Shown piece by piece: positions 40,424-63,955 of a stretch of 64,000 nucleotides of DNA. The notes beneath the pieces were generated by a model. It saw only the letters and a program-made list of their open reading frames with translations, had not been told where the DNA came from and searched no databases. Numbering within the stretch: the stretch's first letter is position 1; the number at the start of each line of letters is the position of its first letter. Origin of the DNA: Selaginella moellendorffii. Taxonomy: Eukaryota > Plantae > Lycopodiophyta. A program made the position numbers and the translations under genes. The stretch spans positions 1,341,882 through 1,405,881 of the forward strand of contig NW_003314281.1 in assembly GCF_000143415.4 (NCBI RefSeq), given 5' to 3'.

Positions 40424-41403
40424 CTAGACGCGAGCTGGTCTCGAGAGCCCCATGCCGGTGCCACTACCAACATGCTTGAACGTCTTGGCTTCCAGATTTT
40501 CATCGTGACCAGCGAAACCAGTGCCACCTTTCTCCAGCGTCACCATGTTCTTGGCCTTGCACGGCCGGTTACACACCGAGCAAGCCTTCTCCGGGATGAT
40601 GAACTGCTCGGCACACTTCTTACACAGGACGTGACCGCAGCTATTGATCACCACCAGCGTCGTCCTGTTCGTCAGCGTGGTGGAACACGAAGGACACATA
40701 TACCGGTTCTCTTCCGTGTCCTTCCCTTCAGGGTCGACGATCTCGCTGAAAGAAATCGTGAAGAGCTGCTTGAGCTTGAGCTTCTCCTTCCCTTCCGGAC
40801 AGATCGTATCAGTCGATGGAGCGTCGATTCTCTCGGCGGCCTCTGGAGTCGCCGATGGAAGCCAGAAAGCTTTCATGCTTTTCAGCGCCTCCTCTTCGTA
40901 AGACGTGACTTTGACGCTGTTGGCTCCCTGGAATCCAGCCTTTGCGTCGCCAAAGTCGTGGTTCTTGTCGTGGTGAGGCACCGCGCTGTTGTTCTGGCGA
41001 TCGAATGCCTCGAGCGCGCGCTCCTTCTCGAGATTTCGCCGCTCCAGCTCGTCCTCTTGATCCTTCTTCTGCTGCGTCGCGAACAACGCGATCTTCCTAT
41101 AGCGCCCACAAAGGCGTTGCAAAATCTATCCTTTCCCCAAGCACAAATCAAGGAAAACCCATACCTCTTGATGTCCTTCTTCTGAGCTAGCAGGGACTCG
41201 AGAATGCACTCCTTGCAGAAGAGATGGCCCTTTTGGCAGCACTGCGGATCGGTGAGGCGCTTAAGGCAAATGCAGCAGGCATCGAATGGCTTGATCGAAT
41301 CCTTGCCCAGCCGCTCCTTCTGCGTGCCATAGCCAAGCTTGCGCCGCTCATCGTATGTGAAGAATGCGAGATCGTTGTTGTTCTTGGAGTGGCGCTGCGG
41401 CAT
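40424..41403 (-). CDS. CSU1: Nitric oxide synthase-interacting protein / E3 ligase CSU1
   Basis: MPQRHSKNNNDLAFFTYDE, LGKDSIKPFDAC, KAFWLPSATP, C-terminal RING, GGTGFAGH. Confidence 0.93.
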
Positions 41404-41484
41404 CCTTCCTCTCCTCAAGCCCTAGAAATTCAAGGAATCAAAACAGAATAAACCTTAAAACTATATGGACTAATAAAAAGGCAA

Positions 41485-41558
41485 TTCCATTGCCGGGATT
41501 TGAACCCGGGTCGCCTGGGTGAAAGCCAGGTATCCTGACCGGACTAGACGACAATGGA
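41485..41558 (-). tRNA. tRNA-Glu(TTC)
   Basis: Reverse complement TCCATTGTCGTCTAGTCCGGTCAGGATACCTGGCTTTCACCCAGGCGACCCGGGTTCAAATCCCGGCAATGGAA. Confidence 0.95.
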
Positions 41559-41664
41559 TGGTGTGAAACCTTGGAATTTTTTTCACTACAGCCGATACCG
41601 CTTTAACCCATTTTAACTTACCACATAGACGTTTGCGGCTTTTTACTTTCTTTAACTCTTCTCT

Positions 41665-43328: not shown

Positions 43329-43460
43329 TCTCCGCCCCGGAGCATCAAAACCCTAAACCTTTGGCATTACGAATGACCCTAGCAGGGATTTTGGAGGGAG
43401 GGAGAGGGCTGGCGATTTCGTCTCGAAAGATCGACTCCTCGGCGACTGGAGCACAGCGCC

Positions 43461-46400
43461 ATGGTAGATTTCATCTTCGGTGAGCTTCTTGGCACGGCGT
43501 CCTCGTGAATCGCTTCCAGATCGGTGCTAGGGCGCCTACATTCAAGAAAGATCCAGGTCTGGACACCGCATTCTTGCGCAGCGTCTTGCGATGGCTGGAT
43601 AGATCGGCAAGGGTCGCGATGGAGCATCAGCAGGAGCCAGTCTTGGAAAAGGATTTGCACGAATTGCGGCAGGAGCTAGAGAAATCGATCGCCTCGGACA
43701 CGCATACGTCGCTGGCGGCTAATATGCTGCTGGATGTTCCCATCGCCGACGGGAGTGGTGGAGGCTCTGTGGTCTCGGGGATTGATCGTGAGCCAGCGGT
43801 TGTCGTGCAGATGATTGGGAACTTCCAAGGAGGTGATGCTGCTACTCCAGCTCCTGCTGGTGGTACGTGATCGATCGTTCCTTAGCTTAGCTTTGATAAG
43901 TTTTCTAACTGCGTGCTTTGTGAAGAACAACCATCTTCATTCCCCGGAGAAGACCAAGAACAACAGGTTCTTCGATTTATCACTGAGTTTCTTCGATTCT
44001 TAAAGCAGATTTTAGCTGCAGAGAAGCAAATATGGAGAAGGAAATGCCTTGAAGGGAAATAAGTTGGCTAAGAAGTTTGGAAGAAAGGTCTATATTGGGA
44101 ACGTCATTGGCTTTGATCCTGAAAGACAGTGGTACAAGGTATGAGTCTCATCTAAACTGTCTGCAATAATGCCCATTTGGCTGTTGTGAAATGTGATAGG
44201 TTGAATATGAAGATGGCGACCAGGAGGAACTTTGGTGGTGGGAGCTGGAACCTTTATTGATTCAATATGAAAAAAGAATGGAATCAATGACAAAGAAACG
44301 ATCACGGTCCGGAGGAGATAAAAAAGCGTAAGAAACCTTTGGTTTTTGAGCTTATGACATGTTTTGATAGTCAGGCTAAGCGGATGAGAGATCCGGACGA
44401 AGAATATCTAGAGCTGGTAGAGGAGCTCAGTATGTTCTCCTCGTCTTCAGGAACTTCTGAAGACGATGATTGGGATAGGGATATCAAGAAGACACCGAGA
44501 TCCAAAAGATCGGGAAAGAAACGAAAGGCGGAAAGCTTGCAAGCTGAAAGAGGGAGCGTGTCTACTGAAAGTATACAGGCTGCCTCCGAGGAAGCTGCTA
44601 CTGAATCCGTTAGCCGGAGAGTAGTAAGATCAAAAAGCTCCTCGGGGAATGAGAACGGCTTCAGCTTGATCGGAAGAGAAACCAGGAAAGTTTTTAAAGG
44701 AAGAAATTATATAGGCAAAGTCATTGAGTTCGATCCGGAAGCAAAGTTTTACAAGGTGCGTGTTTCTCTCTAAGTCAATCTCCTCCTAATTTATTTTTTT
44801 ATTATGTCTGCCACAGGTTGTATATGAGGATGGTGACTCGGAGGAGCTTGAGTGGAAGGAGTTAAAGGCTACATTAGTTTCCAACGACGGCAAATTGCTT
44901 GTCAGCAATGGCCACGTTGAAACAGAATCCAAACAGTCCAGCAATCCGTCCAGCAACAGATCCGTAGATGACACAGAGGTGAATGAACATACTCCAAGGA
45001 GGTACCTACGTTAGTTCGCTGCTTAGTCCTTCCCTTGATATTACCATATTGTACAGGGGAGGAAAAAAGCTGGATGAGATGCCTCTGACAAGCTCTCAAG
45101 TCAAGTATCCAGGCGCATTGCATCCAGCGTTTGAAAGAGCCCGTTTCTTGGAAAATAACACTGAAAAACTGGAGTATTTTGCATGGGGCGAAGTTGTCGC
45201 TTTCGACAAAGCTAAGTGTCCCGATCTGAAAGCTATGGGGACTCTGCCAACAAAGTCTCCCATTGTTCATTTAGCCGTAAGTAGTTCAATTTCATCGTTT
45301 ACGTCTAATACATATAAAGAATTTCAGGCAAGCCAGCATCATCTTGCTGTGTTAACAGCTGCGGGACAGGTTTTTGTTTGGCGAAACAAGCATGGAAACA
45401 TTACTGAGCGTTGCGATGCATGGGAACATATTTCCAGTCTGGATGATAAAACTATAGTTTTGGTTGACATTGCTGGACCAGAGTTGGAGAGATCATCGGC
45501 AGGTTACTCTTCTCATCAAGAAGACCAGGTGAATTGTCAAAGCTTTTCGGCAACATTTTTAACGCACTCTACAGGTTCCAGATCCTTTTTTCCTAGCTGC
45601 GGTGTCTTATAATGGAAATGAGTACGTTCTTCATGGTTCTCAGCCTCATGAACCTGTATGTATTAGATTGCTGTTCTTTATCTGACATATTGCCTCCTGA
45701 AGGTTCATACTTATTCTTTGTTGGAGGAATTCCAATATCCAAGCCTTGAAGATTTATTGAAATTGAATGACACGACTGTGAACAATTTGGGCCGGATTTC
45801 TCAAGTGGCTGTTGGAACTGTTGACGCATTTGACGAGCCTCCATTCATCGGGTACATGTGGCTTCAAGTTATGCACGCTTAAAATAGTTGCAATGCAGGT
45901 ACATTATGGACACCGATCGCGTTTATATTAGATCTGCAACGAAGGACTTCATGGAAGAAGTGAACCACATCACAGGATTTTCGGGAAGGCCTTTGAAAAT
46001 CCAGGTAGTCTATGCGTTTATTTAGTTGTCTTCTTATCGTGATAATTTTAGTGTGGAAGTGCATATCACGCTATTATTCTGACTGATGATGGTCGGGCCT
46101 GGACTTGGGGTCGTGGTTATTTCCCCGGCACCGGCAATGCAACATTTTCTGTATGTCAACCTGCTCTTGGCAGTCTAGTCAACCGAAAGGTTTCTGGTTT
46201 TGTTTTTATAAATCTTTGTGTAGTAACATTTCAGTAACAGGTTGTGGATATTGCTTGCTGTGGTCAGAACTTTATAGCTCTAACAGATGACGGTGAAGTT
46301 CACCAATGGACTCACGGACCTCCCAATTCCTTCCTCGGCGTTGAGAATTCACCAAAATCAGCTTTAAAAGTTCCAACGGAGGACAAGCTACAGAAGGTTG

Positions 46401-46701
46401 CACTTGGAGTCGGGGTTGTCGCTGGAATTTCTAGCGCGGGAAAGCTCCATACCTGGAAGACTTCTCTTGGACACCCAACCTCTGCCAAATGCGCTACACC
46501 GCTGAGTCGTGATGAGAAAAGTAAAGATACCTTTGTTGCTGCACTAGGTATGTATTTTCGGATTTGAGCTAACTAGTCCACGGTCGCTACTTAACTGTAG
46601 GCACGAGATCTATGCTAAAAGCCTTCTGCGTTGCTGGCTCGTCAATAGCAGTCGGGCGAAAGAAGCCACGAGGAAGGCCTGCCATTGGAAAAGACCCCTG
46701 A
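43461..46701 (+). CDS. Protein with two PTM/DIR17-like Tudor domains, RCC1-like repeats and a C-terminal AT-hook-like motif (model inferred)
   Basis: KKFGRKVYIGNVIGFD..WYK|VEYEDGDQEEL and KVFKGRNYIGKVIEFD..FYK|VVYEDGDSEELEW; HLAVLTAAGQVFVW, LTDDGRAWTWG, CGQNFIALTDDGEVHQW; KPRGRP. Confidence 0.65.
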
Positions 46702-46875
46702 AGGTGGTGTACACTTCTTGTTGCTATTTCTTACTCTTCTTTTCCTCCAGGCAGAAGATTAGTATGTACAATACAGATTGACTCATGGTGACTACTTTGT
46801 CCAGTTTTGTATGCAAAATTACAGCAATATAGAATTCAACTGACTGCTTTTGGCAAGCTCTTTGTATTTACTCAG

Positions 46876-48918
46876 CTACCAACAATCGCGGCAAGAACAA
46901 AATCCGTTCTCGAAGTGGTGAAACCTGGTGGCGTCCCTGACAGCAATTTTTCTGTTTAAATGTTTGGACAGAAACTTGATGACGTTATGGCAGTCCGAGC
47001 AGACTCTGAGGTTCTTGACGATGCAAAGAGACGCCTCGGGTGGAGTGTTGAGAACTCCAAAGGCAAGTGCAAGCTTTTCACTGTGGTAACTTAATGACTG
47101 CTCCGTTTCTTCTTCTTCCATTTCAGCTATCCTTGTGTCTGGAACGTACCCGGCCTCCTTCATCTTCTGGAACAGCCTCCTCAGCTCGTTATAAGCGTCA
47201 TCTCTCCGTGGATGCGTCTCATCGAGTGAATAAAACTCGTTGGTCTGGCCTTTGATGGTGATTGTACTCTTTCCAGGTAGCTTCTTTCTGCACTTGATTC
47301 TTATCTGGTCTCTGAGTTTCATTTCCGCAGCTCTGTCCCCAGCGCTGGCGTAGATGTTGGACAGCATAACATAAGGTGCTGGATCTTTTATGGAGCTCTC
47401 GTCCAACTCAAAGAGATGGTTAGCAACCCGGCCTGCCCGTTTCAAGTCTCGGAAAGTCCGGCAAGCACTGAGTAAGCTCGTCCATGCTACAGCACCGGCT
47501 TTAAATGGCATTTTAGTGATGAGAGTTTCTGCGTCTTTCAGGTAGCCAGCCCGTCCAAGGAGGTCAATCGCGCACAGAAAGTGTGACTCGTTTGCAGTGA
47601 CACCATAGTAGTCACCACTTACCAACGAGCTGAAGATATCAGAGCCTTCGTCGAACAAAGCGCCGTGGCTACAAGCAGAGAGAGTGTTGATCAGCGTTAT
47701 CCCGTTGGGCTCCACTCCTGCTTGAACCATGATCCGGAAGATGTCTAGAGCTTCGGAGCTGTATCCATTCTGTGAGTAGGCCGCGATGATCGCTGTCCAA
47801 GATACTACGTCACGGTAAGTCATTTCAAGAAACGTTTGCCTTGCTAACTCCGGGAGACCGCACTTGCCGTACATGTTGCAGATTGAGTTGGCGACACTGA
47901 TATCCTTGGCCAATGCTTCATCCATTCCGTCGCAAATGAACCTACCCAGTGAAGAAGCCGTGAGGTTCGCACAGGCATCGAGCACGCTGCAGTAAGTCAT
48001 CCTACTCGGCTGCAACCCTTCCAGGTCCATACGTCGAAAGAGCTCGAGAGCCTGCTTTGGACGTCCGTTCTGGCCGAATCCAGCGATCATGGCATTCCAG
48101 GAAATGACACTTTTGTCCGGCATCTCCCGGAAAAGCTTCTCGGCCTCGTCAACGCGAGCGTTCTGAGCGAAAGCCGTGACCATGGCATTCCAGGAGACAA
48201 CAGTCCGGTCCTTCATGCTGTCGAACAAGCTCTTGGCCTCGGAGACGCAGCCATTGTAGCCGAGCGCAGAGATCATCACGTTGTAGGAGGCGACGCTGGG
48301 CTCCGGCATCCTGTGAAACATCGACCTGGCCTCCTGGAGCTGGCCAGTATGAGCGTACAGAGAGATCATCGCGTTCCAGGCAATGGTGCTGGGCTCCCGG
48401 GTGGAATCAAACATCGACTTTGCTTCCTCCTTGTGCCCGGACTTGGCATACATGGTCACCATGGTTGTCCACGACGCAGAGGTCTTCCCGGGCATCCTCT
48501 CGAACAGCCGCCTCGCCTCGGGGATCCTCCCAGCGTTACCGTAAGCCGCGATCAACATGTTCCAGGAGAGGACCTTTGGACAGGCGACGGCGTCGAAGAG
48601 CTTGCGAGCATCTTCCAAGCTCCCGCAAGCCGAGTACATTTGGACGAGCTGGTTCTGGAGCTCCGGGTCGTGGTTGAGGCCTTGCTCCACGACCTGGGAG
48701 TGGAGGCGCTTACCTTCGGCAAGGGACTTTGACTTGGTGGCTCGTCCCAGCGCGTCGAGGAGGTTGGTCTTTGCGGCAAGATTTCTTACCGCCTCTGTTG
48801 CAGCTCCAGGCAATGCGGCCATGGTGCGGAGCCATCGCCTTTGGAGCTTCACGGCGCCCAACTCGCGCCTGCTTTGGAACATGCCTAAACCCTTGGAACT
48901 GAAACGAAATGGATCCAA
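46876..48918 (-). CDS. PLS-class PPR protein with E and DYW domains (C-to-U editing factor type), intronless and intact
   Basis: 680-aa ORF with VxSWNAM repeats, PG box, HSEKLA, KNLRVCSDCH; ends CSCRDCW. Confidence 0.95.
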   Translation of the reverse strand: MDPFRFSSKGLGMFQSRRELGAVKLQRRWLRTMAALPGAATEAVRNLAAKTNLLDALGRATKSKSLAEGKRLHSQVVEQGLNHDPELQNQLVQMYSACGSLEDARKLFDAVACPKVLSWNMLIAAYGNAGRIPEARRLFERMPGKTSASWTTMVTMYAKSGHKEEAKSMFDSTREPSTIAWNAMISLYAHTGQLQEARSMFHRMPEPSVASYNVMISALGYNGCVSEAKSLFDSMKDRTVVSWNAMVTAFAQNARVDEAEKLFREMPDKSVISWNAMIAGFGQNGRPKQALELFRRMDLEGLQPSRMTYCSVLDACANLTASSLGRFICDGMDEALAKDISVANSICNMYGKCGLPELARQTFLEMTYRDVVSWTAIIAAYSQNGYSSEALDIFRIMVQAGVEPNGITLINTLSACSHGALFDEGSDIFSSLVSGDYYGVTANESHFLCAIDLLGRAGYLKDAETLITKMPFKAGAVAWTSLLSACRTFRDLKRAGRVANHLFELDESSIKDPAPYVMLSNIYASAGDRAAEMKLRDQIRIKCRKKLPGKSTITIKGQTNEFYSLDETHPRRDDAYNELRRLFQKMKEAGYVPDTRIAEMEEEETEQSLSYHSEKLALAFGVLNTPPEASLCIVKNLRVCSDCHNVIKFLSKHLNRKIAVRDATRFHHFENGFCSCRDCW

Positions 48919-49499
48919 GACGAAGCAGCTATATCAGGTGACTTCTTACTCAATGATTTATGTTTCGCTCACATGTTTCATCTTTGTCCGGATCATCTTC
49001 TTTCAGTTTTTTCTGTCCATGCATCAGCCTTTGTACATCAAATCAGTAATATCATCACTGCTCAGGAGATCGATATTGTCAAGTGCCGTACCCAAGATCG
49101 CGCTGGATCGCATTGAGGACGATCGTAAGAGTGGATGCCATGCTTCGCCATTCTGCCGCCATCCTAGTGCACCCGAGCAGAGGACTCTTTTTTGGGAAGA
49201 TCCAGTGTACACGTTGTTCAACGAGGTCTGAGAACCCAGCCGAAATGATTGATCGAAAGAAAAAATAGGACCTATTGAAGTTTTCGTGGACAGACTCTGG
49301 AAAAAAAATGGAGGAGCTTTTTCTCTACTCTGACTACCTCAAAGAAGCGAGAGTTTTGAGTTAAATACCAGCAGTTCGATTTTATTCGAACTTAAAGTTT
49401 GTAAGCCATCCACATATATAGATTCAACAACCAGCAGTGTCCCAAAATATTTTTCTTGAATTTTTATTTCCTCCAATAAAATTTTAAGGTTACGTATAA

Positions 49500-51450
49500 T
49501 CCTCCTTTAAAAATGGTATGCCATTAATATACTTTTGGCCAACTCAACTAAATTCTTTTTGTTTTTTAAATTAACTAACAACTGTGGTTAGAAAACATTA
49601 TTTTAGTTGTCATAGTTTGGTACATTGAAAACTGGTATGCCGTGATTAGGTTTTGGAGTTGGAATAGGATAGTTGTTATGTCCTATTTTAATGATATTGA
49701 AAAAAGAATTGAGGACAATTAAGATCATCACCTAATATAGTACCATAGTGTATTTATTTGTCACTGTGCTATTGTCCAAAAAGCCCTAGATAATTTATAA
49801 ACTAAATTTGATCAATCTGGAAGAAAGTATGTTATTAATTTTTTGTTAACCAAGTATGCCCAGAAGTTGAGGAATATGCCAAGTGAATAATAATGAAACC
49901 AAGATCACAATGGCTAGAAATTGAAACTCCACTGAGACATTTAGATTGGAGAGGAAGAGAAAAATCATCTGATGAATATTATACCACTTCCAAACTACTA
50001 TTGGGTTCAATAACTAAAATTAAGAAAGACTAAAAATGAAGCAATGTAGAGGGTTTTAGTGATTCATGAAGAAGAAATGAAGTCAAAACAAGAAAGAACA
50101 AAGGAGTTGTCTAGCTAAACAATCTTTAATTAGATTGTACTTTCATATTTCTTAAAACCTTATGTGCAACATCTACTATGTGAATATAATGATAAAGTGC
50201 AAGACAAGGATACTACTTCTAAAGTTGGTCTATATCTCCACAAACATATAGAAGTAGTTCTTGATTTGACATTATTATTTAGCATTATTATTTAGTATTA
50301 GAGAGATGCTATTGAAAAGTGGCTCTAATCTTCATAAGTATTGTGCCTTGCTTATATGTTAATTGTTCAAGAGCAGGCCCATTGAACAAGGAACAGAGGT
50401 TTTATGACAATGCTCTAACTGATATTTTTATGAATGATGTTATAGTGGACAACAAAGCTAATGATCCTCATGAGAAATGTTGGATCTAAGTGAAAAAGTA
50501 TGAGCTCTTTAACATTATCATGAAGGCCAAAACAAAAAGTATTCCTTAAGAGTTGTCTCATTCTATGAAATATTGGTGACAACCATTTAGAACTCAAATG
50601 TTACATGCAAATTTGGAACCTTGATGCAAATGTTACAAATTGTTGATGGCAGTCCATTTATAAACATGTTGAAATCTTGAAAAATAAAATCCCTCTTCTC
50701 AAAAAGAGCAAAGAATCAAAAGAAGTATCTCAATAAAAAGAGATCAAATTAATCCCATAGTTGAAGTGCAATATCAATTAGGCTACATAACAATCCAAAG
50801 CCTAACTTGGTTAAGGAATCCATGAAACTTAAACTATATGCTATTAAATTTTGTTGAGCTTAAAATTGGAAAACCACTATTTTTGCTGAAGAACTTGCTA
50901 AAGGGTTAAGTGAAAAGCTATTTTGGATTGCTGCAAAAGTTCCATATGGCTTCCATGGAATATCAACATTTGACTAGAGCTGAAGAAGGGGATGTAAAAA
51001 ACCATCAATCAAAAGTGTTTAAACTATCAAGAGTTAGTTATCAAGAGAAGAGAAGATGACAAAAATTATTAACAATATACTCAAAAAAGAGAAAAATGGA
51101 TTTGTATTGAATATGTTGAGTAAAAAGTCCTAGAAACCTTACTTTTATCTCTAGAAATTAATCTGATCCAATCTCAAATTAATCTATGAACCTAATTTGG
51201 ATATGAGTCTATGCTAATCCTAGATGTTATCTATGTGTATTTCAATTCTTACATGACATGAAGAAGTCAATTGCTAATTTAAATAGCCTTACAACTGCAC
51301 AAAAGCAAGAAAAAGCATTGCTTAGTGATCATATAGTGACTAGATCCTTATGTGTACATATGTGTGTACTTCTACTCACTTGGCTTCTCATCAAGATTGT
51401 TTTTTTCATGATACAAGGGTAACAAATCAACTAACATCAAATGATTGCTG
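49500..51450 (+). mobile_element. Possible highly decayed DNA transposon (hAT-like) remnant
   Basis: AT-rich and stop-riddled; NVTCKF and LFWIAAKVPY weakly recall the BED finger and N-terminal hAT motifs. Confidence 0.25.
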
Positions 51451-52950
51451 ATTCAAGTATTTTGAGTGTTTAAGCAACAAGAGCTTTATGTGTCATGCTT
51501 TTTAAGCTTGCCTTTAGAGTATTGGCGGTGCCTTTTCAAAGCTATTAATTTTAAGATGCAAATGAGAATATTCTTTACAGGGTGCAAACATTGTTTCTAT
51601 TATAATAAAACATCTTTTAGAACTTATTTCTATTTATCTTGCTTTTATATAGTATGTAAATATATGCACTTGGATTGATACAACACCTTTATATATCAGA
51701 AGAATTTTAGCTATAATATCCTACAATCATGTCACCTGCCCCTTGATAATATTAATTTTTTTTAAATAAAATCTTTCTACTACATCTGTAGTTTTTGAAC
51801 TTATGTAGATCATAAATAGATAGTGAACTATAGATGTTGCCAGCATATAGCAAACTTCATTACACACTATCACATTAACCCAAAACCTTAATTTATATAT
51901 AAAAGCCAATTAGTCTCATTATACTAATTATAGTATATGAAATTTCTTTAATGTCATTACAAGTTGTCAATGGTAGTTTCTTTGACTTAGTTGTTATATA
52001 AATCAATGTTACACATAAAGATCCACCAGCAATATACACAACCACAAGCAATCCTGGCCAAGATCTTTTACAGAGTTATGGCGGTAATAAATAAAGGAGT
52101 GGTTTGAGGCTGCATTGCAAGGGATGAACCACACTAAATTACCAAACTCCAACTTCTAAGTTTATAATCCTCAGGTTGTGGAAGAATAGTGGTGTCAATT
52201 ATACTCTTCTGTCAATTTAAGTTAGTGATTTTAAGTTGATGAGGGCTTTTCTATTGTCAACTTCTAATAACAAATATGCCTAGGTGTAAGGCAATTGCAA
52301 TTAGTATTGGGCACTTTCTCCATAATCAAGTGGTATTCTAGTATTCAAATGAGGATGCTGATACTCTCCTATATTTATGGTCTAAGCATTTCATGTTTTA
52401 CATCTTGACATTTTGACATTTATATACTACACAACTATTTATGATTCATAAACACAGCTTTCAAGAAGATAATTTCAAAATACTGATAATCTAATATTAT
52501 AAGTAGAGTTATATTTTTTAGCCTTACTCTTTGAATATTTTCTTAACCTCATGTTGGGAGGAATCCTGATATATATACTGATGAGGATTATAATTCACCC
52601 ATATATTAAATATAAGAGAATGTCAAAAGTGTAAGTAACTAAAGAGAAGAATTTGAGAGATGATCTATTATGTGGTTAAGTTTACATGAGTTCAACTTTT
52701 CTTTTTAGAAATGGTGCATATATAAATGAAAAAGGATAAAACTAAATTGCACTTTATGGTTCTTTGGAATGGAACAATAACAGTTCATAATAATACATCT
52801 AAGAAACAAAAGCAAAATTAGGCAGAGTGATGCCCTTTATATATCACTATCTATCTTTGAGCAGCTAGAGACAGCTTGCCCTAGGGCAGGAGTGTAACCG
52901 GGTTGACACACAATTCTGAAGTTAATTATATTGAATAAATAACATCTAGA

Positions 52951-53859
52951 TTAAAAACATAGAATTTCTTTCTTTCTTTTAATTATATCAAATAAACATA
53001 TAGATCCAGAATTTCGTATAGCTAAACAAACCCTTCCATACATATTGCAATTTGAACAAAGCATTTTTGTTGACCATACAATGTTTTTAATACCTTGTAT
53101 AACAGCATTTCCACTTGATTTTATTTGCAAATAACAATTAGTGTCTTTACTTCTTGTAAAACTCTCCCAGATTACTTTTTTTGGTAAATACTTTTTATCA
53201 TATAATTTAAGGTCACAATTCGATTCCATTGTCATTATATATCTGTTATTTAAGGAATGCAAACTATTCCCTTCAGGGAGATAAGTTCCAAAAAACTGAT
53301 CAGGACCACTTATAAGTTGATAAGTATAAGGCCAACAAGTATTTGACCCAATATCAAAATTATTACTTATTATATGGGGCAAAATGAGTGGGGGATCAGT
53401 ATGAGGATCTCTTGTAGCTTCTCCATTATTTATATATTCAAGCTCATAATTTTCAGAAGTAATAGTAAGATGACCCCATGCATTTAATAATGCTTCTCTT
53501 ATAAATGTTGAATATAATTCTTGTATTCCTTTATATAATTGCTTACTAGTAATTTGGATGACGGAATCAGGATCCATAGAACAAGTATGATAACCCGCAG
53601 CTGATTCACTAAATGTACGAATAATAATTTTTGTATTAGGAACATTTTCAATATCACTCATACCCATTGCACCTAATTCATAATTCTCATTTCCATTGTA
53701 TAATCCCTCAAGTAGCGCAACAACAGTGTTTATGATAGTTCTAATATGAGAATCAGAAAGATGACCGTGCTTATTACAAACTCTAACAAACTGAGACTGA
53801 AGATTATCACATAAAATCAGAAATACAATAAGAACAAATATCCATTTCCACTTCATCAT
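52951..53859 (-). CDS. Secreted protein: signal peptide + unassigned ~170-aa domain + C-terminal bulb-type (B) lectin domain; intronless and AT-rich
   Basis: MMKWKWIFVLIVFLIL signal; LPEGNSLHSLNNRYIMTMESNCDLKLY..VIWESFT..CYLQIKSSGNAVI..VWST B-lectin pattern. Confidence 0.8.
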   Translation of the reverse strand: MMKWKWIFVLIVFLILCDNLQSQFVRVCNKHGHLSDSHIRTIINTVVALLEGLYNGNENYELGAMGMSDIENVPNTKIIIRTFSESAAGYHTCSMDPDSVIQITSKQLYKGIQELYSTFIREALLNAWGHLTITSENYELEYINNGEATRDPHTDPPLILPHIISNNFDIGSNTCWPYTYQLISGPDQFFGTYLPEGNSLHSLNNRYIMTMESNCDLKLYDKKYLPKKVIWESFTRSKDTNCYLQIKSSGNAVIQGIKNIVWSTKMLCSNCNMYGRVCLAIRNSGSICLFDIIKRKKEILCF

Positions 53860-54039
53860 CAACAGACAATTATTTACTTGTAAGCAATTATAAAAGCCAA
53901 AAAGCATAGAATCCTTTTATGTCATTTTGCCGTCTAGCAACAACTATACTATTGGGGAGATGGCGGCCAGATGGCAATCCACAAAGTCTATCTTTCTTAA
54001 CCACAGCACAATGCTCCCGAAAATTATATCTCCTCGCTC

Positions 54040-54560
54040 AAGAATGGCTGTTGTATAGATTGGACACTGCCACATATAGAGATCCATCACTACCACTCAG
54101 CCACGAGCACTTCCAGCAGCAGCTCCACTCTTATGGGTTTTGCATGCATCCAGAAGCGCCATCCGCACCTGCGACCATCTTGAATGGCATGCTTGTCCGC
54201 CACACTTGTAGTGCTCCGCCGCCAGATGTATCCTGTGATCGCATCTCATCGCCATGAAGCACTCCCAGAAGAAACCCCGAGTAGCTGCACGCCCCAGGGA
54301 TGTTCGTGAAGGCCACCGCATCAAGATGGATCCCCTTCCAAGAACAGCTCTCCATCGCCTGCCAGCCATGCCGGTGCTAGGCATAGATTGCAATCCAGGA
54401 GATCTTGTCCTTGATCCGATCAAACAGGCGATCACATCCCCAAACCATGCGTAGAGATTGACGAGTGTCGTGCCGACGTTCCGGTCCAGACCGGACTGGA
54501 TCGCCTCGTCGCGAACGAGTGCGCCAGAAGCCAGATCGTGCAAGCGGCGAGAGAGTGGAA
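54040..54560 (-). pseudogene. Deleted PPR (E-class) pseudogene, duplicate of 61969-62600
   Basis: Colinear with ~61975-62600 but with multiple internal deletions. Confidence 0.85.
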
Positions 54561-54636
54561 GTGGCTCTGGGATTCATTTTGGGCTTCACTGTATTCCAAG
54601 TTTAATTTCTATGTCAATTGTATTTGTAAGTGTTAA

Positions 54637-54998
54637 TTAAAAACACTGAAGTATTTTCTTTCTTTTAATTATATCAAATAAACATATAGATCCAGAATTT
54701 AGTATAGCTAAACAAACCCTTCCATACATATTGCAATTTGAACAAAGCTTTTTTGTTGACCATACAATGTTTTTAATACCTTGTATAACAGCATTTCCGC
54801 TTGTTTTTATTTGCAAATAACAATTAGTGTCTTTATTTCTTGTAAAACTTTCCCATAATACTTTTCTTGGTAAATAATTTTTATCATATAATTTAAGGTC
54901 ACAATTTGATTCCATTGTCAATATATATCTGTGATTTAAAGAATGCAAACTATTCCCTTCAGGGAGATAAGTTCCAAAAAACTGATCAGGACCACTTA
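54637..54998 (-). pseudogene. 3' part of the second B-lectin gene copy (split by the Helitron)
   Basis: Near-identical to 52951-53312; stops at the Helitron 5' end. Confidence 0.9.
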
Positions 54999-55108
54999 TC
55001 TATAATAATAAGAACGAAGAACCCACACCCCCGCAGCCGTCCGATCCCGGGCCTCTATAATAATAAGAACGAAGAACCCACACCCCCGCAGCCGTCCGAT
55101 CCCGGGCC
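54999..55108 (+). repeat. Perfect tandem duplication of the 55-bp Helitron 5' terminus
   Basis: tctataataataagaacgaagaacccacacccccgcagccgtccgatcccgggcc at 54999 and 55054. Confidence 0.95.
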
Positions 55109-55526
55109 CGGGGCAGCCTCGGAAGCCATGGTCCTCGGGAAGGGGAGGCCAGCCTAGGCTCGGGCCATGGCCAATGGCCATGGTTAGCGGGAATATGGGC
55201 TTAATGTTGTGGCGGCCAATGGGTGGGATGCACGTGTGGCCAGGAAGGGAAGAGGGCGTGGTGACAGGTGTTATGCCATGCACTCCTAGGGTTCCATGGC
55301 TGCTCGGTTGTGTGGGCATTCCTGTGAGAGCCTGTGCGTGGTTAGTAACAGGGGCGAGCAGAATGGTAGTCGGGCACACAATCCAGGCTCCTCTCGGGAT
55401 CAACTCAGGACTGTGAGAGGCAAATTGGCTCATCTCCAACTCAGCAAAGCTTTGATCCCTGTTCGCCACTGCCTCACGAGCTCTTTGGCCTACAGGAAAG
55501 CAATTATCAAGGACACTCCCTCTTCA

Positions 55527-56034
55527 TTCCCGAGACTTGGGTCACAGTCGAGCCCCGTGCCGATGCGTTTGTCATCAGCATCGGTGACACATTCCAGGTA
55601 AACAGAGCGAGAATTCTTTTGTTTCTGCTCTTCCCTCTCCTCTCCCTCCTCGCAGCGCTATAGCTGGTTGTAGATGGTGGTGCTCTTCTTTTTTCCTTTT
55701 CTTTTTATAAAACATCTCTCACGCAGCTTTCTCTTCGTCACAGGCACTGTGCAACCATCGCTACAAGAGTGCCAAGCACCGCGCAGTGATCCATGCCACC
55801 CGAGCCAGGCACTCGCTGGTTTTCTTCATCAACCCGGGGCTGGACATGGTGATCCGGCCGATTCCAGAGCTGGTGGTCAAGAGCAAAGAAGACGAAGAGC
55901 AAGATCGCAAGAGGCCGTGCGTGGAGTTTACTTGGGGGCAGCTGCTAGAATTCACCCAGAAGCACTATAGAACCGATGTCCACACGCCGGACGCGTTTGA
56001 GAGCTACTTGAGGAAAACGAGCCAAGCAGCGTGA
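55527..56034 (+). pseudogene. Captured 3' fragment of a GA20-oxidase-like 2-oxoglutarate dioxygenase (2 exons + intron)
   Basis: WVTVEPRADAFVISIGDTFQ|ALCNHRYKSAKHRAV..RHSLVFF..FTWGQLLEFTQKHYR; GT-AG intron 55598-55744. Confidence 0.85.
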
Positions 56035-56565
56035 GGACGGACAGGGAAGAACGAATGTAAATTTGCCAAAGATCATCGAGCAGAGGAGGAGCCTACAGGA
56101 AAGCAATTATCAAGGACACTCCCTCTTCAACCCCGGATTCTCTCGAGGCATCCCTTCCTGGTGAGGGATTGTTGTTTCAGCACATGCTCGGGACCAACTC
56201 CGTTTGTAGGAACCAGGTGTTTCGAGTTGACGTAGGGCTGTCGAGTGGCTAGCCAACACTGCTCCTGAAGTTTTGGAAATCTGACACGGCACTAATGTCT
56301 GGTTTCTCTCGAAAGAGAAGGAGAAGCCACCGCAAGCATCGCCTGGTTTAGCTTCGTTTTTAGATCGAGGTAAGTCGTCAGTTTGAATATCTTTGTATTC
56401 TATGATGTGTAGCAAGTGTTGGGAAAGGATGGGAAAGCTGGCATCAATCGGTTTGTTGCAGTAGCCCATGGATAAAACTGTAGTTCGTGGATAGATGTAT
56501 GACATTATAGTCAGCATTCCAGAATCAATCCTAAGATAAATTTGTTTAGAATGATCATGTTAAAA

Positions 56566-56650
56566 TAAATGGTGGCGCAGTTGGTCAGCGCGTAGGTCTC
56601 ATAGCTGCTGAGAAATCCTGAGGTCGAGAGTTTGAGCCTCTCTCATCCCA
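56566..56650 (+). pseudogene. Intron-containing tRNA-Met(CAT) pseudogene inside the Helitron
   Basis: TGGTGGCGCAGTTGGTCAGCGCGTAGGTCTCATA-[intron]-ATCCTGAGGTCGAGAGTTTGAGCCTCTCTCATCCCA; 5' GGGG of the acceptor stem missing; T-loop TTTGA. Confidence 0.85.
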
Positions 56651-56729
56651 TTGTTTTCAAGTTTGGTCTGAAAAGAAACTTGGATCATTAATGACATGTT
56701 AAGTTCAAACAAAAACTAACAAAATTCAC

Positions 56730-57180
56730 CTACATTGTCCAGAGTTTAATCAAGCCTGCAAATGATGGAACTGGCTGAGGAGAAAAGGAGTTGTTTCCAA
56801 CGCTTCTGTTATGCATACACACATGCATCAGGTCAACTCCAAATTAAGAAGAAATATTACATTAGTTGGAGAGCTCTCAACCCGCTTAGATCAGGTAACG
56901 TTCCAGTAAAAGCGTTATCATTGATGTGTCTGTAAATGAAACAAAACTTGAGTACAAAGTAGTTACCATATTAGCTATTTACATTTCAAAGAGGGTTGAT
57001 ATCCGCCCCAAACTGCTCAGCAGTGATCCAGCAAATCGATTTTTGTCAAGTCTCCTGAAAATACACTATTACACGAGATTGTATTCTAGCCATCAACGGC
57101 TTACATGATGGTCAGCTTGGAAAAGTTTCCAATTTCATCGGGAACTTCTCCAGAGAAGCCATTATTGTCCAGTAACCTGA
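56730..57180 (-). pseudogene. Captured LRR-receptor ectodomain fragment (about four ~72-nt LRR exons with introns)
   Basis: LLDNNGFSGEVPDEIGNFSKLTI, LDKNRFAGSL, INDNAFTGTLPDLSGLRAL, VGNNSFSPQPVP. Confidence 0.8.
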
Positions 57181-57269
57181 AGGACAACAGGTCCAAAAAC
57201 CTCCAAGAAAATGAGAAAGATACATAAAAGTGCTTGAGTTCAGGTAAGAAACATATTTCTGGCGCATCC

Positions 57270-57309
57270 ACCTCTTTGTAAACCACCCAGCATTTGCTAG
57301 GCAAGTACT
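57270..57309 (+). repeat. Internal copy of the Helitron 3' terminus (40 bp)
   Basis: acctctttgtaaaccacccagcatttgctaggcaagtact matches 61241-61280 with one mismatch. Confidence 0.95.
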
Positions 57310-57310
57310 T

Positions 57311-60300
57311 TCACTTTACAAGCAAAATAAGAACTCTAATTTTAAAACAAATATTAGACACTATAATAGTGCTCTTGCTTTTGCATCTATGTCTTCTAAT
57401 ATTGATATTGTAAAGGGTCATGGTCCTTATTGCTTTAAAAGCCATGGTCAAATATATCATAATATTGTTTCAGCACATCCTTCTGAAGGTCAACATCGAA
57501 CTTATGGACAACTTTATATGCTTGATACTCTAGAAGCTACAAATATAAGAAAGCAAAACCCTTTTAATTCAAGTTGTGAGACAAACTTACTTAAACATCT
57601 TGATGCTCTCCTTCGTCATGTTAACCCATATGCTCAAGCTTTCAAAATGATGTATGAAATGGAACAAGAAGAAATTCGTTCTGCTACGCTTTCAGGTTAT
57701 CCTATACGTGGTGTTTACATGTTATTAAAAACTGAAGGAACTGATCCACGATGCTATAATGCTCCACGGACAAATGATGTTGCTGTTGTATTTGTTAGTG
57801 ATGATGGAGAACCGCCACATAGTCGTGAAATTTGTATATATCCAATTGCAAGCAATTCTAAATGTATCTCAACACTTGATTATAATTGTGATCCAATGGT
57901 TTACCCATTAATATTTCCTTTTGGTGATAGAGGTTGGCATGAAAAAATTTTTAATTCCAGACGTCGAATTACATTGCTCCAATATTATGCATACCGTTTA
58001 TCTATAAGAGACACAATACGCTTTGGTTTTGATCAAATTTTACATGCAGGAAAACTCACACAACAGTATATTGTCGATGCTTATGTAAAAGTTGAAAGCA
58101 ATAATTTGAATTACTATCGCACCCATCAAAAACAATTGCGAGTTGAAATGTATACTGGTCTTATGGATTATGTTGCAAACCGTGCTACTAATGAAAATAT
58201 AAATCCAGGCAAGATTGTTATTTTACCTTCAAGTTTTGGGGGTGGCCCTAGAGCAATGCAACAAAATTATCAAGATGCAATGGCTATAGTTACTCATTTT
58301 TCAAAGCCAGATCTTTTCATTACTTTTACATGCAATCCCAAATGGCCAAAAATTTCTAAAAACTTACATCCAAATGAAAGCCCTGAGGATCGTCCAGACT
58401 TGGTTTCTAGAGTATTTCATATCAAGCTTAAAGAATTTTTGAATGATATTACTAAAAATCATATTTTTGGAAATTGTATTGCTTTTATAAATGTAATTGA
58501 ATTTCAAAAGAGAGGCCTTCCACATTGTCACTTTCTAGGGATTTTATCTCATGAAAACAAGATTAAAGACCGTGATGCTATTGACCAATACATAACGGCA
58601 CAATTGCTTGATCCTCAAAAGGAACCTGAAATTTCTAAAATAATTACATCTCATATGATACATGGTCCATGTGGGCCTCTTTACTCTAATAGTCTTTGCA
58701 TGGAAAATGGCACTTGCTCAAAAGGTTATCCAAAAAAATTTAATTATGAAACTACTTTTAGTGTTGATGGATATCCAGATTATTATAGACCTGATAATGG
58801 CCGCACATTTCTAAAAAATGGGTGTTATATTGATAATCGTTGGGTAGTACCTTATAATAAATACCTTTGTAAAAAATATAATGCTCATATTAATATTGAA
58901 ATTTGTGCTACTATAAAAAGTATTAAGTATTTATTTCAATATGTTTATAAAGGTTATGATTGTGCTACAATTGAAATCCATTCAGCAACCCAACAACTTG
59001 ATAATATTTTAAATTGGGATGAAATCTCAACATTTTTAAATACACGTTATGTATCTGCTCCAGAAGCAATATGGAGACTTTTTAAATTTAAAATGCATGG
59101 TCGTTCGACCCCTATAATCTGTCTTCCTATCCATCTTCCAAATTTTCAAAACGTCTATTTTATAGAAGGTTCTGAACAAATAGCACTTCAAAGAGCTACT
59201 CAAAATGGTACGATGTTGACAAAATAGTTTGAATTAAATATAAATGACCCAAATGCTAGACAATATACATATCCTGAAATCCCTTTATATTATACATTTA
59301 ACCCTTATACTCATAACTGGCAAATTCGACATACAAGAAATGTCATTCCTCGAATGTATTCTGTGTCGCCATCTAATGTTGAACTATATCATTTACGTCT
59401 TATTTTACTCCATAAAAAAGGTGCTACATCTTTCAAAGATCTTAAGATAGTTAACAATATTTATTATGACACATTTCAACAAGTTGCAGATGCAATGGGG
59501 CTTATAGCTGATGATACCGAATGGGAAAAATGTTTAGAAGATGCTTGCTTTTTTAGAATGCCATCACAATTAAGACAATTATTTATATTACTTTGTATCT
59601 TTTGCACTCCAAAAGATCCTTACCTCCTGTGGGATAAATTTAAAGACTTCCTCTCTGAGGATTTCATGCAAACAAATCCAATTTTTCATTATGAACATGC
59701 TTTACATGATATAAATATTAAAATGAAAATGCATGGCAAAACTAATCAAAACTATCATCTACCTATGCCGTCTGAAAATTTTGATGATGAAAATATTGTC
59801 AACTCAACACAAATATATCAAAATGTTGAACAAAATATTCCTCGATTTAATCAAGAACAGTTAAATATTTTTAATGATATTCTTAATGTTATTGATCACC
59901 CAACTGAGCATAATCGATATATTTTCATTGATGGTCCTGGTGGTACTGGTAAAACATTTCTTCTTAACACTCTTATAAATATTTTACAACTGAAAAAAAT
60001 AAATGTTGTTAGCATGGCTTGGACAGGAATTGCAAGTACTTTACTTTATAATGGCCGAACTTCACATACTACTTTTAAACTTCCTGTTCCAATAAATGAA
60101 ACATCAACTTCCGCTATAACTGCTAATAGTGAAGCAGGTATAAGAATCAAAACTACTAACGTATTGTTATGGGATGAAATAAGTATGGTTCACACTCATG
60201 CATTCACTGCTGTTGATCGAGTGTTGCGAGACCTAAAAAATACATCATTACCTTTTGGTGGCATAATTGTTATTACTAGCGGGGACTTTAGACAAACACT

Positions 60301-61240
60301 TCCAGTCATTCCACATGGACATAGGGCATAAATTGTTTCAAGTTCTGTAAAAATGAATAAATTATGGAGATTATTTAGAAAGTTATCTTTGAAAACAAAT
60401 ATGCGGCTTGTTGAAAGTGATAAATCATGGTCTGAATGGCTTCTCAAAGTTGGAAATGGTGAAAATTTTGAAAATTTACCATCTTTACCTTCTAACTCCA
60501 TTTTATTACCTCATACACAACTAATTTATTCATCAATTATTGATTTTGTCTACCCTTCAGTACTTGATATTTCAAACCCTTATATTGCAGCCAACCGAGT
60601 CATACTTACCCCACTTAACGATGATACATTTGCACTCAACAACACTATTGTCTCTAAATTACAAGGTGATACATACATCTACAAAAGCATTGATTTTGTT
60701 GACACTGAATATCCTGAAAATTTTCCAACAGAATTCCTAAATTCTATCACACCTTCTGGTCTCCCACCACATAAACTCTCTCTCAAACAAGGTGCTATTC
60801 TTATCCTCCTAAGAAATATGTCTCCATCAGCAAGATTATGCAATGGTACACGTCTCATCCTGAAAAATGCACTACCAAATGTTTTAGATTGTGAAATTGT
60901 GATGGGGCAATTTAAAGGGACAAGAGTTTTTATCCCACGTATTACACTAATACCATCAAATACAGAAATTCCATTCAAAATGTCCAGACGACAATTTCCA
61001 ATTCGTTTGGGTTACTGCTTAACAATCTCCAAATGCCAAGGACAGACATTTGACCGAGTTGGAGTTTACTTGCCCCACCCAGTTTTCACTCATGGACAAC
61101 TTTATGTGGCTTTATCAAGATGCACATCACCATATGGACTTGGAATTAAAGTTCAAAACACCACACGCCAAGGCCACCTCCTTCCTCAAGATCCTTCTGT
61201 TTTTACAATTAACACTGTCTATAAAGAGGTTTTATATTGA
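57311..61240 (+). pseudogene. Helitron Rep (HUH-Y2) / PIF1-like helicase; one frame, 5'-truncated, two premature stops
   Basis: DLFITFTCNPKW, EFQKRGLPHCH, YLFQYVYKG; DGPGGTGKT, WDEISM, GDFRQTLPV, KCQGQT, HGQLYVALSR; the three ORFs share a frame with stops at 59225 (TAG) and 60329 (TAA). Confidence 0.95.
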
Positions 61241-61282
61241 ACCTCTTTGTAAACCACCCAGCATTTGCTGGGCAAGTACTCG

Positions 61283-61819
61283 TAAGTTGATAAGTATAAG
61301 GCCAACAGGTATTTGACCCAGTATCAAAATTATTACTTAATAGATGGGACAAAATTAGTGGGGGATCAGTGTGAGGATCTCTTGTAGCTTCTCCATTATT
61401 TATATATTCAAGCTCATAATTTTCAGAAGTAATAATAAGATGACCCCATGCATTTAATAATGCTTCTCTTATAAATGTTGAATATAATTCTTGTATTCCT
61501 TTACATAATTGCTTACTAGTAATTTGGATGACGGAATCAGGATTCATAGAACAACTATGATAACCCGCAGCTGATTCACTAAATGTACGAATAATAACTT
61601 TTGTATTAGGAATAGTTTCAATATCTCTCACACCAATTGAACCTAATTCATAATTCTCATTTCCATTGTATAATCTGTCAAGCAGTAAAACAACATAGTT
61701 TATGATAGTGTTAATATGAGAATCAGAAAGATGACCCGCTTATTACAAACTCTAACAAACTGAGACTGAAGATTATCACATAAAATCAGAAATACAATAA
61801 GAACAAACATCTTCATCAT
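61283..61819 (-). pseudogene. 5' part of the second B-lectin gene copy
   Basis: Colinear with 53313-53859; also a 1-bp deletion at ~61735. Confidence 0.9.
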
Positions 61820-61968
61820 CAAGCAATAAAGAAATAATATAATTATACTTTAGATTTACTTGTAAGCAATAGAAGCCTTTTATTTAGTACATCGTCTAGC
61901 AATAGAGCAGATGGCAATCTACGAAAGCCTATCTTCTTAACCACTCCACAATGCTCCCATCTGCTCGC

Positions 61969-63560
61969 TCAACAATGGCTGTCGTATAGATTGGACACTG
62001 CCACATATAAAGATCCATCACCACCACCCAGCCGCGAGCTCTGGAGCATCGCACTTCCAGCGCCAGCTCCAACCTCGAAGCTCTTATGGGTTTTGCATGC
62101 ATCCAGCAGCGCCATCCACGCCCTCGAATCCGTCTGGAATGGCATGCTCTTGATCAGCTCCTCCGCCTCACCGATCCTGCCCGATCGCCCAAGAGCGCTG
62201 ATCAAACACCTGTAGTGCTCCGCCCCCGGATGAATCCCGTGATCAGATCTCATCGCCACGAAGCACTCCCAGATCTCGTCCAGCAATCCCGAGTGGCTGC
62301 ACGCCCCCAGGATATTAGTGAAGGCCACCTCGTCGAGATGGATCCCCTCCAAGCACAGCGCCTGGAAGATCTCCATCGCTTGCCTGCCATGCCCGTGCTG
62401 GGCATACGCCGCCACCGTCGCAGTCCAGGAGATGGTGTCCTTCATCCGATCAAACACCTCCCGTGAGGTGATCACATCCCCGAACCGCGAGATTGACGAG
62501 CGTCGTGCCCACGACTGCGTCCCTGTCGAGGCTGGACTGGATCGCTCCGTCGCGAACGAGGAGGAAAGATCGCCCAAGCGCGTGCAAGCGGCGAGAACGG
62601 TCGCAAGAGTGGAAGCGTTGGGTTTCACGCTGAGGATCATCTCCCTGTACAGCTCCAGCGCTTTCCTGTCGTGCCCCGCCATCGCTTCTGCAGCGCTCCA
62701 GCAAAGAACATCTCTCCTAGAGATCTTTCGGAATGCCGATCGCGCACAGTTCAATCTCCCACAGCCAGTGTACAAGCTGGCGAGCGCGGTGCCGACGATG
62801 GTATCCGTCTCAATCTGGGGGCCCAGCCGGGAATGGAGCAGCACTGCCTCTTCTATCGGCCCAAGCCCGCCAGCGCGTTAAGAAAGCTCGCGTACGCGAA
62901 AGCATCGGGCTTCACACCACCAGACGCCATCTCCTGGTAGATCTTCAAAGATACTTCCAAATGCCCAGCTTCGGCATTTACTGCGACCATTGCGTTCCAC
63001 AACACAAAATTGCGGTGCGTCATTCGATCGAACAGCTGCTTCGCCCGATCGATTCTACCGCACTTGGCATACATCGTGACCAGAGCAGTTTAAAGGCCCA
63101 CGTCCTGTTTGATCCCTCTTTCCACGATTCGCTCGTGGATTTCCAGCCCCTGCTCCAGGCATTTCAATCTAGCGCGAGCGCGGGTGGATCTACGTGCTGG
63201 AACGGACGAGAGCTCGGTAGAGACAGAGCGCCTCTTGCTCCTTGCAGGCCCCAACGTATGCCGAGATGATGATCGCCCAGGAGAATTCGTTCCGGAGTGG
63301 CATGCTATCGAACGCCGCTCTGGCATCTTCCAGCCTCCCGCAAGCTCTGTACACCTGGACGGGCAAGTTGCCCACCGCTGTGGATAATCCGGGCATGGAC
63401 ACGCCTCCCGTCCTCGAGCAGTCTCGATCGGTCACACTTCCGGAGGATCGTCGCGTACTCCTGTCTGAGCTGAGCATACCTGGACTGTGGTGGTTCCATC
63501 TCGATCCAGCGTGCACGTTTGCTAGATTATCTGCGAACTTGAGAAGATCCATTTCTTGGG
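61969..63560 (-). pseudogene. PLS/E-class PPR pseudogene
   Basis: MYAKCGRIDRAKQLF, EHYRCLISALGRSG, AWMALLDACKTH, YVAVSNLY spread over several frames. Confidence 0.85.
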
Positions 63561-63583
63561 AACTTACAAGATGAGAGTTCCAC

Positions 63584-63955
63584 TCACTCGTACTCTTCTG
63601 GAGGAGCTAGGCAATCCCGCACCAAGTATGGGTTCTCCATTGCCGCTACAACGCGCTCCTTGTCATTAAGTTGCTTGTTAATGATCCATGTCGTACTTCC
63701 ATGTCGTACTTCCACGTCGTACTTGCGGCCCATTGCAAACTCGCCAGCGTGGCAGAACGCCGACAGCACGGTAATCATCGTGACGTCGCTGGGAGCCGCA
63801 CTGCCGGCCTGGATCATCCGGTGGAACACCCACAGTGTGCCGTAGTGGTTGCCATTCTGCGAATATGCCATCACCATGGTTGTCCACAGCACCGCGTCGT
63901 CATTGCACCTCTGCCGCACGCGGCAGAAGAGGCAGTTCTTGGGTAGGGCAAGCAC
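63584..63955 (-). pseudogene. PPR fragment
   Basis: VLWTTMVMAYSQNG..PSDVTMITVLSAFCHAG, then diverges. Confidence 0.65.

Follow-up and report, generated by a model that had tools for sequence, protein, structure and literature searches.

A probably composite Helitron with doubled 5′ ends, a damaged internal 3′ end and a truncated transposase gene in Selaginella moellendorffii

Composite Helitrons have already been published from maize, fungi and bats, and the mechanisms behind them, described from maize, Fusarium, Xenopus and bats, have partly been reproduced with the element Helraiser; no new question is opened by a further case. In the multi-termini helitrons of maize, 99 of the 100 internal 3′ ends are without an intact terminal tetranucleotide, and they derive from nested elements (Dong et al. 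2011, PMC3288121). In Fusarium oxysporum, the first 31–85 nt of FoHeli elements are found repeated once, which is attributed to self-insertion and a subsequent chimeric excision (Chellapan et al. 2016, PMC5148889); according to the model presented there, a relative is hit close to its 5′ tip by another element, after which the transposase begins its work at the outer of the 5′ ends and ends it at the first good 3′ end that it meets. In Myotis, Helitron 3′ ends have been renewed next to 5′-truncated Helitrons, and in experiments with Helraiser, read-through occurred in 11.7% of events and, once the hairpin was deleted, in at least 36% (Grabundzija et al. 2016, PMC4778049). The element considered here occupies positions 54999–61282 of a 64,000-nt stretch of the genome of the lycophyte Selaginella moellendorffii (hereafter, the window; assembly GCF_000143415.4, contig NW_003314281.1, positions 1,341,882–1,405,881, forward strand). 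It starts with two tandem copies of its 5′ end and contains, in addition to its terminal 3′ end, an internal damaged one, at which the gene of the Rep-helicase (RepHel) transposase is cut. We read this insert as a genuine, fairly young Helitron that entered an A/T target (a slash marks the insertion point or the junction throughout), and as a chimera of a cargo-bearing element and a truncated autonomous element; taken as a whole, with the history that it entails, this reading appears to be just on the probable side.

The evidence for the insertion itself comes from a tandemly duplicated host unit (copy 1, 52950–54600; copy 2, 54636–62560), each copy of which includes a minus-strand AT-rich open reading frame (ORF) of 318 amino acids and a PPR fragment. 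The insert lies in copy 2, copy 1 being uninterrupted:

53301–53330, no strand assigned: empty target site of the uninterrupted copy 1, GGACCACTTA/TAAGTTGATAAG, i.e., CCACTTA/TAAGTTGAT
54636–54998, no strand assigned: left flank, part of copy 2, 94.8% identical to 52950–53313
61283–61939, no strand assigned: right flank, part of copy 2, holding the decayed N-terminal part of the AT-rich ORF

A comparison of the empty and the filled site (CCACTTA/TAAGTTG) indicates insertion between A and T without a target-site duplication, as in Helitrons; identical flanks enclose the 6284 bp of 54999–61282, and the boundaries are ambiguous by 1 bp, a T being present at both sides. The initial annotation, made from the letters alone, had described an empty site at 53301–53330 and a 6284-bp insert with a TC start, a hairpin followed by CTCG and no target-site duplication, and all of these coordinates hold. 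The host ORF of copy 2 has stop codons of its own in its N-terminal part, which are independent of the Helitron insertion. The other haplotype, with which a comparison had been suggested, agrees with this picture. Its allelic stretch (L001, 29.6 kb), located via the allele of the neighbouring PPR gene, is collinear with window positions 36857–49500 (97.9% identity) and differs in structure beyond 49500; it contains a third copy of the host unit, uninterrupted and with the same target site (reverse complement near L001 position 16861), and the insert sequence is absent from the whole of L001. Since uninterrupted copies exist both in the window and in L001 and the insert sequence is missing from the latter, the insertion is real, younger than the duplication of the host unit and missing from the corresponding region of the sister haplotype.

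The ends of the element were recognised as follows:

54999–55053, plus strand: outer 5′ terminus, the first 55 bp of the element, with a TC start, beginning TCTATAATAATAAG
55054–55108, plus strand: inner 5′ terminus, repeating those 55 bp exactly and in tandem, again TCTATAATAATAAG
57270–57309, plus strand: inner pseudo-3′ terminus, with a G to A change in a hairpin arm at 57299 and the tail CAAGTACT followed by TT, not CG
61241–61282, plus strand: outer 3′ terminus, regarded here as the functional one, consisting of ACCTCTTTGTAAACCA, a hairpin and then CAAGTACTCG

The TC dinucleotide with which canonical Helitrons start is found at both 54999 and 55054, and the two 55-bp copies are 100% identical (Tandem Repeats Finder: period 55, 2.0 copies, 100% matches). 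The outer hairpin (61257–61272, CCCAGC ATTT GCTGGG) has a 6-bp stem and a 4-nt loop, lies 10 nt before the end, as is characteristic of a subterminal Helitron hairpin (about 10–12 nt), and has a predicted folding energy of −6.2 kcal/mol, equalled in 4 of 200 shuffles. The hairpin expected of a Helitron is present; the element ends in CTCG, which is not the canonical CTRR. Helraiser insertions with the ends CTTG, CTAC and AATG have been recovered experimentally, so that CTRR is a consensus and not a requirement (PMC4778049), and CTCG is treated here as a variant end that gives no grounds for excluding the element from Helitrons.

The inner 3′ copy (57270–57309) is identical to 61241–61280 at 39 of 40 positions, the sole mismatch being the G to A change in the 3′ stem arm (57299), and the hairpin is no longer predicted for it; after the 40-bp match, the inner copy continues with TT and the outer one with CG. 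The stem mismatch asserted earlier was therefore recovered, together with the loss of the fold, whereas the supposed absence of the last two terminal bases can be equally well described as two substitutions (TT for CG). What the inner and outer 3′ ends have in common is the terminal 40 bp alone, with no shared sequence upstream of them. Neither terminus was found elsewhere in the window, where dinucleotide shuffles give 0 expected matches for each, and the pattern of the 3′ end had no match in metagenome contigs. The element accordingly possesses two 5′ termini in the same orientation and, in its interior, a pseudo-3′ terminus whose terminal motif is damaged, and the pairs of ends listed in the initial annotation (54999 and 55054; 57270–57309 and 61241–61282) are borne out by the 100% and 39/40 matches.

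On its left, the 55-bp repeat begins precisely with the first base of the element, and there is no microhomology at its edges; because of this, doubling by a random tandem duplication is improbable (such an event would be expected to hit the first base of the element in about 1 in 6000 cases), and a simple tandem duplication of the 55 bp after insertion was rejected as unlikely. One may speculate that, once 55 nt had been synthesised, the second catalytic tyrosine cut the regenerated 5′ site again, and that rejoining followed.

The part of the element between the two 3′ ends is occupied by the transposase gene:

57311–61240, plus strand: RepHel frame, a single frame of 1309 codons and a natural TGA, with Helitron_like_N, PIF1 and Pif1_2B

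The frame is interrupted by two in-frame stops, TAG at 59225–59227 and TAA at 60329–60331, and its TGA is located one base before the 42-bp 3′ terminus. The three pieces delimited by the stops were searched separately; Pfam searches clearly identified a Helitron RepHel protein (Helitron_like_N, E-value 2.5e-64; PIF1, 3.9e-46; Pif1_2B, 3.2e-16), and the pieces are collinear with chain A of the Helraiser structure 7LCC, matching residues 196–816 (phmmer E-value 9e-197), 865–1192 (7e-71) and 1205–1495 (2e-83). The HUH motif (in the form HCH) in GLPHCHF aligns to GLPHAHI of Helraiser, the tyrosine pair in KYLFQYVYKG aligns to KYLFKYIYKG, and a Walker A motif (GPGGTGKT) is present. No RPA-like gene was found in the element.

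The 5′ part of this gene is missing. Its first methionine, at 57389, corresponds to Helraiser residue 196; the frame remains open for 26 codons further upstream, up to the inner 3′ end, and the homology begins a few codons past that end (KNxNSNFKTNIRHYNSALAFAS, compared with the consensus KNFxxNIRxYNSxxAFAS). Relative to Helraiser (1496 amino acids), about 170 N-terminal residues are lacking, and full-length relatives carry 100–350 more upstream residues with a conserved cysteine-rich motif, CxxC...CCHxGKV, which is absent here. The RepHel gene is thus cut N-terminally exactly at the inner 3′ end, in agreement with the position that the initial annotation had given it, between the two 3′ ends and truncated at the inner one. 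In Helraiser, the N-terminal domain, which includes a zinc-finger-like motif, is required for binding and cleavage of single-stranded DNA (PMC4778049). Without the N-terminal DNA-binding part of its transposase, and with two stops in what is left, the copy is incapable of autonomous movement, as it does not encode a complete transposase. A weak tandem repeat (57315–57367, 26 bp × 2, 78% matches) adjoins the inner 3′ end and covers the first codons of the RepHel frame.

The openness of this frame bears on the question of whether the doubled termini are real. A mis-join, or a collapse of two Helitron copies, in the assembly could have produced them, and the sister haplotype, being without the element, offers no second assembled copy, so that it is a confirmation of the empty site and not of the doubled ends. 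Such an artefact is nevertheless extremely improbable: the sequence is contiguous and free of N gaps around the element (the one assembly gap in the window, 6426–6525, is 48 kb away), the flanks are equal to the empty site to the base, and the RepHel frame stays open past the inner 3′ junction. The repeats of 55 and 40 bp are also shorter than a Sanger read, which we take to be the read type of this assembly.

The sequence between the inner pair of ends is of a different nature, and its recognisable contents are plant-like:

55109–57269, plus strand: cargo block between the inner 5′ and the inner 3′ end
56569–56646, plus strand: tRNA-like fragment (Rfam RF00005, 29.5 bits, the gathering score being 29)

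Two exons of a 2OG-Fe(II) oxygenase fragment were found, one ending at 55597 and the next starting at 55744. Searched separately, they match positions 38–70 (E-value 0.02) and 69–101 (E-value 0.0023) of the 2OG-FeII_Oxy profile, each match being below the threshold on its own. A GT..AG intron (55598–55743) is retained between them, and the fragment was therefore captured as genomic DNA. It is bracketed by a 45-bp direct repeat (55488–55532 and 56091–56135, 96% identical), which may have arisen by a partial tandem duplication or from two capture events involving paralogs; both copies of the repeat encode the same exon start. ARAGORN made no tRNA call at 56569–56646. The tRNA-like piece may be a 5′-truncated intron-containing plant tRNA gene; it presumably resembles the intron-containing elongator tRNA-Met of plants, a likeness that serves as a lead and not as a result. 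On the minus strand, near 57104–57170, a resemblance to leucine-rich repeats was noticed by eye alone, with no Pfam match, and the remaining ORF pieces of the cargo likewise matched no Pfam family. The cargo with plant-gene features is confined to the inner pair of ends, where the initial annotation had put all of the host-gene cargo, and no cargo-like sequence was found between the two 3′ ends. In base composition, the first 1.45 kb of the cargo are host-like, with a guanine plus cytosine (GC) content of 52%, against 54% in the PPR gene and 33% in the RepHel part.

This composition also bears on a reading in which the repeats do not stem from two elements: the 55-bp doubling would be typical of the family or of local origin, the inner 3′ end would have been duplicated within one element, and the 5′ side of the RepHel gene would simply have decayed. 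Such a structure has a counterpart in the autonomous family HelenXT233 of Xenopus, which has two left terminal sequences arranged as a direct repeat (PMC11417382), and the complete identity of the 55-bp copies suits it as well. However, RepHel homology sets in abruptly, and not gradually, at the inner 3′ end; the two 3′ ends have their terminal 40 bp in common and no sequence upstream of these; the GC content shifts from 52% to 33% between the halves; and the left edge of the 5′ repeat is exactly the start of the element. Taken together, these features make an origin from a single element quite unlikely.

A composite of two elements accounts for them in another way. Both internal junctions coincide exactly with element termini. 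The junction 57309/57310 joins a decayed 3′ end to the middle of a RepHel gene, and a nested cargo insertion is the simplest source of such a junction. We infer two parents, of which the first would be a non-autonomous element of 2.26 kb (55054–57309), filled with captured scraps of plant genes, and the second would have contributed the 3′ 3.97 kb of an autonomous element (57310–61282). The composite anatomy is supported by the evidence given above, and a route to it can be suggested. An autonomous copy would have received the cargo element in its N-terminal coding region, and the terminator of the cargo element would then have decayed by the hairpin mismatch and the alteration of the terminal CG; if the inner CG was lost by deletion, the next base is T, as expected at an A/T target. 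With the terminator damaged, read-through is predicted: a transposase supplied in trans would start at the 5′ end of the cargo element, pass the dead terminator and stop at the next intact one. For the additional 55 bp at the 5′ end, the best explanation would be that self-insertion happened a second time, close to the 5′ tip of a further member of the family, with subsequent excision from the outer 5′ end, as in the ‘two 5′ termini’ model of Fusarium. The whole chimera would finally have landed in the already decayed paralog of the AT-rich ORF, on this haplotype only. Nesting or read-through is the route documented for structures of this kind (PMC3288121, PMC5148889, PMC4778049).

Several observations weigh against this account. 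The junction 55053/55054 reads C/T and not the A/T of a canonical nested insertion, the history requires several steps, the 3′ end CTCG deviates from CTRR, and the 100% identity of the 55-bp copies would suit a very recent local event as well. No second copy of the family, whether a standalone cargo element, an autonomous element or a composite, was obtained from proteins, metagenome contigs or the sister haplotype. Read-through alone leaves the 55-bp doubling unexplained, and simple nesting at position 55 needs a target other than A/T. The fusion by nesting or terminator read-through proposed in the initial annotation is thus supported as to the composite anatomy and plausible as to the route.

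The number of steps is where construction in place has its advantage. An autonomous element would have inserted here, a cargo-bearing relative would have nested 55 bp inside its 5′ end, and one deletion would have removed the last 2 bp of the nested element, the 5′ region of the autonomous one and its N-terminal coding sequence; the insert would never have been mobile as a unit. These are fewer events (two insertions and one deletion), and the single deletion accounts for both the lost CG and the lost N-terminus, but it must begin no more than 2 bp from the nested terminus, a coincidence that we estimate at about 1 in 1000. The nesting site would, moreover, be C/C-like and not A/T, and all three events would have to fall on one haplotype after the divergence of the haplotypes. 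We regard construction in place as unlikely, while giving it some weight, and consider it somewhat more probable than not that the chimera moved to this site as a unit.

The affinity of the transposase was analysed with relatives sought among 5.8 and 1.84 billion proteins. The three ORFs of the element have no entry in the protein collection. Neither word searches with the Rep and the first helicase pieces nor an exhaustive search of representatives revealed a relative above about 54% identity. The best relatives are 45–54% identical, and the Rep piece is 49–54% identical to its best matches, scoring 658.6 bits against Helraiser and 701 bits against the best match. The named best matches are animal, i.e., from a nemertean, a sea urchin, Hydra, a horsehair worm, spiders and a pseudoscorpion, as well as wasps, springtails, a frog, a gecko and fishes; the non-animal exceptions among the best matches are a partial record from Zostera, situated on a contig of 2.4 kb, and two metagenome-assembled records, also partial, that bear the label Gammaproteobacteria. 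A clade containing angiosperm sequences is about 38–41% identical to the spikemoss Rep piece, and for the first helicase piece, plant and animal matches are nearly equidistant.

Phylogenetic trees were constructed with FastTree (145 sequences) and IQ-TREE (54 sequences), in which the named angiosperm proteins were two, from Erythranthe and Aristida. The angiosperm-containing clade was split off with a support of 98–99 in the Shimodaira–Hasegawa-like approximate likelihood-ratio test (SH-aLRT), leaving the spikemoss sequence on the animal side, where it adjoins a group of mite, frog, gecko, springtail, caecilian and fish sequences. A grouping with the plant clade was not rejected by the approximately unbiased (AU) test (log-likelihood difference 26.7, p 0.135). 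In the HELIANO survey, the hosts of the multi-host HLE1 subgroup f are all animals, and more than 90% of the HLE1s of land plants belong to other subgroups (PMC11417382). On these sequence comparisons, the transposase would appear to be closer to animal Helitrons than to the sampled angiosperm ones, an open lead that may reflect either an old lineage or horizontal transfer. Horizontal transfer is not claimed, as a position beside the plant clade survives the AU test. A more far-reaching scenario, in which a Helibat-like lineage known elsewhere only in animals passed between kingdoms into a lycophyte, captured plant fragments and was mobile until recently, the 5′ doubling being a footprint of the re-use of its start signal, seems quite improbable. 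If true in a tree with other lycophyte and fern Helitrons, the animal affinity could matter more than the composite.

The neighbours of the element in the window are typical of plants and include PPR-DYW, U-box/ARM and mitochondrial carrier genes:

46876–48822, minus strand: PPR-DYW gene, whose partner in a 90% cluster is XP_024545204.1 from S. moellendorffii scaffold GL377627.1

The protein encoded at 46876–48822 has an exact counterpart among NCBI proteins, on a scaffold of 2.3 Mb, whereas an exact look-up of a start variant of 668 amino acids gave no match. The NCBI model of XP_024545204.1 (L001:10001–19602) takes 9.6 kb for a PPR protein of 668 amino acids and crosses the duplicated units; this span looks like an annotation artefact. 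Decayed PPR copies accompany the duplicated unit in the window (54000–54550 and 61969–63930, minus strand), the longer of which has several in-frame stops upstream of an open piece of 291 amino acids. In copy 1, the 318-amino-acid ORF (52951–53907, minus strand) is intact, with 30% GC, a signal-peptide-like start and a sub-threshold B_lectin match; its composition is odd in comparison with neighbours at 54–60% GC. This ORF had no entry in the protein collection, nor did a search of the ESM Atlas yield a usable match. The AT-rich ORF forms a small local family, with an open copy of 304 amino acids on the sister haplotype (L001:12199–13101, plus strand) and the copy with stops in copy 2. The preceding 3.4 kb (49500–52920) are AT-rich and contain, among ORFs of at least 70 amino acids, a single GTG-initiated one of 70 amino acids; this stretch has no counterpart in the otherwise collinear sister haplotype, and from here on, the duplicated units are arranged differently in each haplotype.

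With an empty site, doubled ends, a broken internal terminator and a transposase gene cut there, all within 10 kb, the locus is an unusually clean natural specimen of a chimeric Helitron, which can be used in teaching, as an example for annotation and for starting a catalogue of the family in Selaginella. The systems with which it can be compared share different parts of this structure. The transposase is collinear with that of Helibat/Helraiser from vespertilionid bats, and the 5′ TC, the A/T target and a hairpin 10–11 nt from the 3′ end are also common to both (PMC4778049); unlike the spikemoss element, Helraiser has a mammalian host, a CTAG end and a complete protein of 1496 amino acids (PDB code 7LCC). 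The left terminal sequence occurs as a 5′ direct repeat in Xenopus HelenXT233 too, described in the HELIANO paper, but that element is an HLE2 (Helentron-type), its left ends are non-identical, and the repeat is a stable feature of an autonomous family (PMC11417382). FoHeli elements offer a doubled 5′ start with a single functional 3′ end, and also one case of a non-autonomous element nested in an autonomous one (PMC5148889); they are, in contrast, fungal, non-canonical Helitrons with other ends and target sites, and the internal pseudo-3′ end upstream of a truncated RepHel gene seen here is a feature not described for FoHeli (PMC5148889). The maize helitrons likewise combine several termini of the same orientation in one element, for which transposition from the outer 5′ end and a stepwise capture of cargo have been proposed (PMC3288121). 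They represent an angiosperm-type family of non-autonomous elements with CTAG ends (PMC3288121), whereas in the spikemoss element, the downstream partner is a nearly complete RepHel gene truncated at its 5′ side, and the doubled 5′ end consists of 55 bp in exact tandem.

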